The notes: generated by a model not told the origin, from the letters alone. Numbered from the stretch's first letter, positions 40,904 to 52,629 are shown. The stretch is DNA of 64,000 nt from Tubulanus polymorphus (GCF_964204645.1 NC_134031.1:5766001-5830000), one strand, 5' to 3'. Numbers and translations are program-made.

Positions 40904-43900
40904 CTTGTGTCATTTGACAATCCGATCTATAGTAATTTCAAAGAGGACCACCCAACTGATGACGACACTGGTGAACTGTACGATGAGATACCCGCAGACC
41001 ATATTCCTACATCATCCACAACTGCCTCATCTCAGTATCTAAACGGTAGTAATGTCATGTTGGTGGAAAAAAGGTCCAAGTGTTTCTTGCTCAACTACAA
41101 AATACTCTGCGCAGTTTGTCTTATTCTGTTGGTTGTCGGTATCATCATTGGAATTACCGTACACCTTACCGGTACGTAGAAATCGAAAACGTAGCAGATG
41201 GTCATGCATAAGACTTTTTATGAATATAAATAGTCGACAAGATGTTGTAAGATCTAATGAAGAATTTTTGCTTAAGTGTCATTTTCAAATTTTTTACGAT
41301 ACTTTATTAACGTCTTGATGAGAGGCGAATGATTCAACTGAAATAGCTGATATTAATTTGTGATCTTCAATCGTCATGACTTCACCGAACGCAACACATT
41401 TTGGCATTGGTGAAGTGACCAAAGTTGACCTATATAGTCAGCCTATTTCTCCTTACCGCGGCTAGCTTTTACAATCGTCAAGATTACGGGCATTACGTTT
41501 CTCCTTAGGACTGCTAATAATTCCCTTACTATTGAAGGATTAAGGCTATCCCATAATTTTCTCGACCATTGAACCAACCCTGCAAATATATATATATATA
41601 TATATATATATATATATATATATATATATATATATATATATATATATATATATATATATATATATATATATATATATATATATATATATATATATATATA
41701 TATATATATATATATATATATATATATATATATATATATATATATATATATATATATATATATATATATATATATATATATATATATATATATATATATA
41801 CATATATATATATATATATATATATATATATACATATATATATACATAATTGTGGCTCATTCATTTGTATATGCGTGCTAGTACATGTGTTTTCAACGTG
41901 TAACCTCAAAAAACTTCTGGAAATTAATTCGGTATATTGCGTGACTGTAGTTGTGACGACTTTCTGACTGGCTCGTGTGTGTAACCGAGATCGATTTTTG
42001 AATACAAATCGCGTGACTGCCATTAGAAACTTATTAATTAATTTCGAATCAGCCTTCGCGACGTTCTGGTCGCTGGCGTATACCTCACAAATTAAAAAAG
42101 GAAAAGGTGTCCTTCGCGATTCCGGGAAGAAAAATTAATGAAACTATCAGATGATTAAAAATCGTAGAAAAATGATATTTTTTTCGACACAACTTTCTTT
42201 CTGTATTGATTCCCGCAGAATTTGAATAATGCTCGTAAACGAAATGTTTTCAGATTCGATTGATTTGTTAGTAGATAATGTGCATTTAGTTTTGATAATG
42301 ATGGATAGTACTTTGTATGATAACTAGTTTATCAGACGCACGAGCTTTCGGTACTAATGTATAGGATAGTAACATTACATTAGTACTATTCACTAGTAGC
42401 GAAAGCTCGTGCGTCGAATAAACTGGTTAACCTTCAGAAAGTACTATCCATCTCGTTGTATTCATTCTACACCAGGGTTCAGTTGCATAGCCAAGGCTTA
42501 GCAACTTAAGACCAGTCTTAAGATTTAAGAGCACTTTCCGACTTAAATCTCGATCAATGGAACATGACCCATAGGGTTGGTTGGACAGTCTCGCGTCCGA
42601 AAGTATAGTATAGTCTTAAATCTTTAGATCGGTCTTAAGTCTTTAGAATGGCTATAGAACTGAGTTTTACGTAGACTGGTCTTAAGTCTAAGCCGTGCCT
42701 ATGCAACCGACCCCTGGGGCCAGTTGCACAGTCGTGACTTAAGACTGGTAAGTTGGTCTTAGACTGGTATTAAGTCTAAGCCGTGTCTATGCAACCGGTC
42801 CCTGGTTAACACGGCTCCTCTACGAGTCTTCTCACAATAGATACATGTTACTTGTGTCTCGAACGTATAAACTGTAATCGTGATCTTTTTTTCAATTTTC
42901 ATTTCAGCGCCGTCCAAAATATCGGACCATACGTCCGGCCCGCCAGCTACCAAGGCTAAATATGGTAAAATCCGCCCCAATTCAAATATTTAGGTTTAAA
43001 AAACACAATGAAAAAGACAAAATACACTGATTACTTGGCACATATACGTATTCATGTATATGGGTATATACAATATTATGTAATTTGTTTTTTATAGGGG
43101 CGAAGAATTTCACAGGTTTCGCTCGGATAGTTAATGGTATCTATTCGGCTTATCACATGGAGCTTACCAACCCGGAATCTCGTGCTTATCAGGAGTTAGA
43201 ACGGTTATTTATCACTAAGGTAAGTTAACGTCGTCGATTTTTTCCAAAATGCTTTTTTTCTAAGCTCTAAAGTTGTTTACCAACGCGATTTATCGGTAAA
43301 AATCTTGGCGAAAATGTGTGACGTTTCATCAACATCGTTTAAATTTTTCAGATGGACTCGATATTTTTGAACAGTGAATACAATTCCAATTACAACAGAA
43401 CAATGGTAGTCGAATTCAGGTATGGTTTATATCAAAACTCAAACAAACAAAACACTAGTCAAAACTTTAGAATTAAACTTCATAACAACTTTTCACAAAA
43501 TGACCCTTAATGATGAAGATCAATCGTTTAATATCAAAATCAATAATTCTTAGAAAACGGAAACTCATTGTGATATACGGTGAACGATTCTATATACGAA
43601 ATCGGATATGAGCAAATAGACCCTGCTTTGGACCCAAACAGCTCAGCTTGGTCTTGTCCGGGCAGGTGCAGACCCCCCTTCAGAAAAATATCCTACATAT
43701 CATTAATTTTCAGTTTATCAACACTACCTTTCAAAGTACGAGGTATATTTTGAAAATATGAGAGATGATCAGTGCGCTAAAAATGCTCGGAATGTATGAA
43801 AATTAGACAAATTTTTCAAAATTTTCCGGGGGATGGTCAGCAAAGCGCCCCTACCTTGAAAAGTCAGGATCTACCCACTCTAGGTCTCTACTTAGCGTAT

Positions 43901-52629: not shown

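Follow-up and report, generated by a model that had tools for sequence, protein, structure and literature searches.

Receptors of the LDLR family, LRP and megalin among them, have a type I topology, with calcium-cage LDLa modules, EGF modules and YWTD propellers in the ectodomain and an FxNPxY motif in a C-terminal cytoplasmic tail. Type II transmembrane serine proteases (TTSPs) are built the other way round, on an N-terminal cytoplasmic tail and a single signal-anchor helix; members of the corin subfamily carry a stem of SEA, Fz and LDLa modules, followed at the C-terminus by a protease domain of the trypsin fold, with SRCR ahead of it in corin itself. In corin and matriptase the LDLa and Fz modules of the stem serve substrate or zymogen control. 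A further described system is the pair EGG-1 and EGG-2 of Caenorhabditis elegans, LDL-repeat proteins of the oocyte surface that are endocytosed after fertilisation (PMC13042291). Here we describe a locus at positions 40904-52629, on the plus strand, of a 64,000-nucleotide stretch from Tubulanus polymorphus (GCF_964204645.1 NC_134031.1:5766001-5830000; hereafter the window, to which positions refer unless a contig is named). It is one expressed gene, and its product, of at least 2,222 residues, is a single-pass type II membrane glycoprotein in which an N-terminal FDNPIY motif, a membrane helix, SEA and Fz domains and 40 contiguous LDLa modules follow one another. Neither a protease-less SEA-Fz-LDLa protein nor an N-terminal NPxY motif in TTSPs turned up in our literature searches.

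Gene structure and encoded protein

Nine GT-AG exons (40904-52629, plus strand) join into one continuous open frame of 2,222 codons; their coding total is 6,666 bases, the phases chain and the frame is free of internal stops. The exons and the principal elements within them are as follows.

40904..41171, plus strand: exon A, encoding the cytoplasmic tail, a basic cluster and the signal-anchor transmembrane (TM) helix; starts at an acceptor without an ATG and ends in phase 1
40913-40930, plus strand: FDNPIY motif, in exon A
40979-40990, plus strand: YDEI motif (YxxPhi type), in exon A
41102-41167, plus strand: signal-anchor TM helix, in exon A, with Lys/Arg on its N-terminal side
42908..42964, plus strand: juxtamembrane micro-exon of 57 nucleotides (nt), 19 codons; spliced joint in RNA runs X2 and X3, GT-AG flanks
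43098..43219, plus strand: exon B, N-terminal part of SEA (SEA profile positions 8-45); spliced joint
43352..43419, plus strand: exon C, middle part of SEA (SEA profile positions 47-68); spliced joints
43983..44152, plus strand: exon D, C-terminal part of SEA (SEA profile positions 70-113), opening with R/EGSVIV (the slash marks the exon junction); spliced joints
44816..45009, plus strand: exon E, Lys/Pro/Thr-rich stalk and start of the Fz cysteine-rich domain (CRD), Cys 1-2; spliced joints
45601..45754, plus strand: exon F, Fz CRD core with Cys 3-7; Pfam Fz, E 2.5e-7; spliced joints
46336..46458, plus strand: exon G, last part of the Fz CRD with Cys 8-10; spliced joints
47117..52629, plus strand: exon H, 40 contiguous LDLa modules; stop codon TAA at 52627-52629; joint 46456>47115
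52630..53255, plus strand: 3' untranslated region (UTR), with AATAAA at 53235-53240; its end is inferred from the total length of an RNA contig

Contigs from four sequencing runs (X1-X4) were compared with window positions 41900-47899. Spliced contigs came from X2 and X3, runs of two separate studies, and X1 and X4 behaved like genomic DNA. The X2 and X3 contigs have the same joints, all GT..AG: 42963>43097, 43217>43350, 43417>43981, 44149>44813, 45007>45599, 45753>46335 and 46456>47115. A single X3 contig of 7,458 nt spans all seven, and the loose end that it shows before 42907 matches the final 30 bases of exon A, so that exon A is spliced to the micro-exon and connected by way of it with the exons for SEA, Fz and LDLa. 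The contig's length is the sum of 163 nt 5' of exon A, 6,666 coding nt, 3 nt of stop codon and 626 nt beyond, which puts the end of the transcript at about 53255, some 15 nt past the sole nearby AATAAA, and makes exon H the terminal exon. With the transcript ending just after this signal, there is no room downstream for an exon encoding a protease or a second TM helix.

At the other end, exon A is preceded by an acceptor (ctatatttttcag/CTT) and has its first internal ATG at 41056, and the transcript continues 5' of it, by about 163 nt in the X3 contig and by about 813 nt in the X2 contig. As exon A opens at an acceptor without an ATG, the true N-terminus must be encoded by one or more exons upstream. 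A preliminary description of the locus, made from the sequence alone, had listed the elements in 40904-52629 and named three findings that would speak against it: splicing out of the large exon into a later protease or TM exon, a 40904 exon separate from the LDLa exon, and membership of a family already characterised. On all three counts the outcome favoured the description, and the X3 contig, which runs through the micro-exon and is colinear as far as the poly(A) signal, bears out the joining and the end. All the elements that had been listed were recovered, except that the 57-nt exon at 42908-42964 had been missed and exon A begins at an acceptor and not at an ATG. We are highly confident of the architecture and the transcript as given here.

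All searches and folds were made exon by exon, with SEA and Fz scored as separate exons. Exon A encodes LVSFDNPIY, an acidic stretch with ELYDEI and a basic cluster, EKRSK, ahead of a hydrophobic helix some 22 residues long, and with them the N-terminal cytoplasmic tail and single signal-anchor helix characteristic of TTSPs. FDNPIY is of the LDLR-type FxNPxY form and lies on the N-terminal side of the membrane, about 57 residues away from it. The orientation is type II: basic residues stand before the helix, and a disulfide-rich ectodomain with 30 NxS/T sequons comes after it. The type I topology with a C-terminal NPxY that marks the LDLR family is absent, the motif and the TM helix both preceding the ectodomain.

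Exons B, C and D are colinear with a SEA profile built from ten homologues, and the junction of C and D reads FR/EGSVIV, the classic SEA self-cleavage motif, its G/S at 43987-43992; a GSVIV motif within exons that match the profile may mark an autoproteolytic SEA domain. A feature search of the Atlas returned weak SEA clusters only (score 0.76). The ten cysteines of the Fz domain are divided over exons E (two), F (five) and G (three). Exon E aligns to the stalk-Fz junction of the proteins P0128 and P0143, and the best solved-structure matches of exon F are Frizzled CRDs, weak at E >= 0.02. The corin-subfamily stem of SEA, Fz and LDLa modules is thereby present.

The remainder of the protein is the LDLa array. 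Pfam marks 40 Ldl_recept_a stretches in exon H (E 1.3e-279), and direct parsing gives 40 six-cysteine modules with 240 cysteines and linkers of 2-8 residues, the stop codon TAA standing one residue past the last cysteine of module 40. Every module has an acidic cage of the CDxxxDCxDxSDE type, and in 38 of the 40 the C2-C3 loop, at 10-13 residues, is unusually long. Two types mostly alternate from module 8 onward, A then B, the B type bearing the signature W/F-P-Y-x-G-Y-C. An AlphaFold model of modules 15-18, with an alignment made of paralogous and annelid units, has a mean predicted local distance difference test (pLDDT) of 88.7 and matches ligand-binding modules of megalin, VLDLR and LDLR, with Foldseek E-values down to 1.7e-11. 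Neither EGF nor YWTD was found by Pfam in the eight plus-strand frames scanned, exon H giving Ldl_recept_a and LDLRAD1_C only, and mollusc SRCR and trypsin queries had no tblastn match anywhere in the 64-kb window. The protein's make-up therefore agrees with what had been claimed for it: FDNPIY and LYDEI before a single TM helix, SEA, a Thr-rich stalk (of a short Thr/Pro type), a 10-Cys Fz CRD and 40 contiguous LDLa modules up to the stop, with no EGF, YWTD or trypsin domain.

Some further observations concern the surroundings of the exons. Intron 1 holds a perfect-looking microsatellite, (AT)131, at window positions 41586-41848. Five intronic stretches (42300-42900, 44300-44700, 45300-45700, 46100-46300 and 46500-47100) have a summed word depth in X1 of 10^3-10^4, against about 24 elsewhere, and show many rearranged joints; they resemble high-copy interspersed repeats. 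The X2 and X3 contigs differ from the assembly by single bases in exon H at 47291, 47580 and 47697, and at 47356 the DNA run X1 also departs from it; these differences are probably allelic. The next recognisable coding open reading frames (ORFs) downstream belong to a neighbouring gene on the minus strand (window positions 55448-57312), and one of them, at 56917-57312, resembles a fibronectin type III module.

Homologues and origin

Whole-database searches with the LDLa exon gave two outstanding matches, both annelid and both uncharacterised. The protein of Paralvinella palmiformis (LSH36_27g01051, P0001) has a TM helix and about 17 LDLa modules of the A/B types and ends straight after the last of them; its gene model is without SEA. 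That of Dimorphilus gyrociliatus (DgyrCDS1968, P0006) starts MSNTSKCFSNPLYD; its FSNPLY tail is followed by a TM helix, SEA as recognised by Pfam, a stalk rich in Thr and some 22 LDLa modules, and its gene model is fused to a cap-binding protein. A shorter LDLa query added fragments only (P0157-P0160), of which P0157 likewise ends straight after its last LDLa. A homologue spread over several exons lies at positions 10001-20171 of one contig (L047; ENA ERZ24900295 ctg6348l); it has 24 or more LDLa modules of the A/B types and stops straight after the last of them, with the ending DGSDEDKC-stop, and its introns contain (TA)n repeats. In the contigs L045 and L047, which carry P0158 and P0159, we found further LDLa exons, and the tail, SEA and Fz exons were not recognisable. 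The window gene is thus a member of a small uncharacterised spiralian family, present in at least Nemertea and Annelida if the source identification is right.

When the tail-TM-SEA part of P0006 was searched against 1.8 billion representatives, it matched mollusc proteins annotated as "atrial natriuretic peptide-converting enzyme-like". Those of Haliotis (P0131, XP_048248347.1) and Pomacea (P0127, PVD38673.1) consist of a CYDNPLF tail, TM helix, SEA, two Fz domains, LDLa, SRCR and trypsin. A further match was a SEA protein from a scallop, in which the motif reads GFDNPQY. A homologue search with the N-terminal region of the Haliotis corin-like protein returned the query itself and nothing else. 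The same genome as the window holds a corin-like gene of its own, on contig C4, and a second SEA-LDLa gene on C8.

C4:26562485-26570537 (L019, L021), minus strand: corin-like TTSP gene with RYDNPAY, TM helix, SEA (NGSVKV), Fz, two LDLa, SRCR and trypsin
C8:8872458-8897500 (L026-L028), plus strand: second SEA-LDLa gene, with a 321-aa exon containing NYYENIEPNYYESI, SEA (RNGSVIA), a 1,608-aa Thr-rich ORF, a second SEA and canonical LDLa in separate exons

One protease exon of the C4 gene is 61% identical to its Haliotis counterpart. Between the C4 gene and the window gene the agreement extends to the introns: the acceptor stands two codons before the motif in the former and three in the latter, and both have a donor after the Gly that trails the TM helix (phase 1), a phase-0 intron at the same residue within the first half of SEA, a phase-2 intron before xGSV and two introns in phase 1, one within Fz after PPCRxxC[EN] and the other beyond the Fz domain. 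The intron before xGSV occurs also in the two SEA domains of the C8 gene and is therefore generic; the intron in the first half of SEA, on the other hand, is common to the C4 and window genes and missing in both C8 domains. The shared motif, module order and intron positions and phases argue for common descent of the window gene with the C4 gene, as a protease-less paralogue of the corin-like TTSPs, and on this comparison we judge a corin-like origin distinctly probable. Elsewhere in the genome, LDLa matches also occur on the contigs C6 (18.66-18.90 Mb), C9 (4.2-4.8 Mb), C10 and C12, in dozens of tandemly arrayed open frames, each about 1,080 aa long.

The window protein is like the spiralian corin-likes in its [FY]DNPx[YF] tail, its signal anchor, its SEA with GS[VI] and the order of Fz then LDLa. 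It differs from them in having neither SRCR nor trypsin, from the C4 protein in having 40 LDLa modules in one exon instead of two in separate exons, and from the mollusc proteins in having one Fz domain instead of two. Since the protease-bearing corin-likes of the nemertean (C4) and the molluscs carry an N-terminal NPxY, the motif was inherited and not newly acquired, and the window gene stands apart only in having lost SRCR and the protease and expanded its LDLa array. The preliminary description had seen in the protein a protease-less TTSP-like scaffold, a view that gains support from the like module order of the C4 paralogue and the five shared intron places; its further idea, that the scaffold had been converted to a new role by an N-terminal endocytic motif, is not supported, since that motif is present in corin-likes which retain the protease.

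Mode of action and competing explanations

The overall explanation that we favour, and think somewhat better than an even bet, is that of a protease-less corin-like paralogue acting as a type II LDLa receptor with sorting motifs in its tail. The LDLa array would bind basic or lipoprotein-type ligands multivalently and in a Ca2+-dependent way, in the manner of the clusters of the LDLR family. Through FDNPIY and YDEI the tail would engage PTB adaptors and AP-2, and with them clathrin uptake or recycling; cleavage of the SEA domain would leave the ectodomain tethered non-covalently. A stalk of the short O-glycosylation type separates SEA from Fz. A candidate adaptor is at hand, as the genome encodes at least one single-exon PTB protein whose nearest solved relative is the PTB domain of the LDL receptor adaptor ARH:

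C9:10053339-10053716 (L038 ORF 1138-1926), minus strand: single-exon PTB protein of 262 aa; Pfam PID_2 and PID; best solved match the ARH PTB domain 3so6, E 9.9e-13

Whether such a receptor would serve as an endocytic scavenger is a closer question, and we put the chance of that function slightly under even. More tentatively still, and as a possibility that we think less likely than not, the N-terminal [FY]DNPx[YF] may be a working PTB/clathrin signal in type II topology that is ancestral to a spiralian SEA-Fz-LDLa clade, one branch of which lost its protease and extended its LDLa region into a rod of 40 modules, roughly 100 nm in length. That branch would then have given rise to a giant scavenger receptor for endocytosis, and a megalin-like receptor would have been reached by a second, independent route.

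Several points weigh against an endocytic function. The case for it draws on a motif and its conservation, and we know of no test of an NPxY placed, as here, some 57 residues from the membrane on the N-terminal side. The tail may moreover be longer than described, as up to about 800 nt of transcript, probably with the start codon among them, lie 5' of exon A. The long C2-C3 loops in 38 of the 40 modules may affect ligand binding. Finally, the motif is also found on the protease-bearing paralogues and may serve sorting or recycling, not the uptake of cargo.

This last point leads to the strongest alternative, in which the SEA-cleaved rod of 40 LDLa modules is a tethered or shed extracellular scaffold or decoy that binds proteases, protease-inhibitor complexes, corin-like substrates or matrix, and the NPxY and YxxPhi motifs provide polarised sorting or recycling only, presumably as they do in the protease paralogues. 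The sharing of NPxY with catalytically equipped corin-likes, the presence of the GSVIV self-cleavage motif and the part that LDLa and Fz modules play in TTSP stems all speak for it; 40 modules with intact acidic cages, however, are most like those of the multi-ligand receptors megalin and LRP1, and we regard the scaffold or decoy as unlikely.

Much less probable, in our opinion, is a gamete-surface protein like EGG-1 and EGG-2, or a trap for Wnt acting through Fz. Frizzled CRDs bind lipidated Wnt, and this lends the trap some plausibility, but the Fz exons of the window gene have corin-like intron positions and their Frizzled matches are the weak ones given above; as the internal and flanking introns are those of a corin-like Fz, capture of Wnt becomes less likely. 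The gamete proposal finds its precedent in the endocytosis of EGG-1 and EGG-2, LDL-repeat proteins of the oocyte surface (PMC13042291). The EGG-2-like match to our protein, however, scores 134 bits against 574 bits for the Paralvinella protein, LRP proteins likewise remaining at the level of generic LDLa similarity, and a specific kinship with EGG-1 and EGG-2 was rejected on these grounds.

Least probable of all is that FDNPIY is untranslated, exon A being partly 5' UTR and translation starting at the ATG at 41056 with a tail of 10 residues: exon A does lack an earlier ATG and its upstream exon was not observed, but the frame is open for 51 codons from the acceptor. Moreover, [FY][DS]NPx[YF] recurs close to the N-terminus in the C4 paralogue, in three mollusc proteins and in the homologue from Dimorphilus, and in the C4 gene, too, an acceptor stands just before it.

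Comparison with known systems

The annelid proteins resemble the window protein in several respects: P0001 and P0006 share its alternating A/B LDLa array, at 40-41% identity over long stretches, P0006 shares the arrangement of FSNPLY tail, TM helix, SEA and Thr-rich stalk, and P0001 ends, as the window protein does, straight after the last LDLa. They differ from it in that no Fz was detected in either and that their arrays comprise 16-22 modules. The resemblance to EGG-1 and EGG-2 goes as far as membrane anchorage and an ectodomain of LDL receptor repeats; the nematode proteins have no SEA or Fz and far fewer modules.

Taken together, our analyses indicate that loss of the enzyme can turn a type II protease scaffold into an LDLa-only membrane protein. 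They also uncover a conserved N-terminal FxNPxY-type motif in spiralian corin-likes (in the nemertean, in molluscs and in an annelid relative), and openly available papers gave us no earlier account of it. Should this motif be functional, sorting by NPxY and PTB would be independent of the orientation of the membrane protein, and multi-ligand LDLa receptors would have arisen at least twice.

Like the LDLR, LRP and megalin receptors, the window protein has calcium-cage LDLa modules and an FxNPxY motif in its cytoplasmic tail. In contrast to them, it is a type II protein with the motif at its N-terminal end, it has neither EGF modules nor a YWTD propeller, and its 40 modules, 38 of them with long C2-C3 loops, form one unbroken run, which to our knowledge is longer than any single cluster of LRP1 or megalin.
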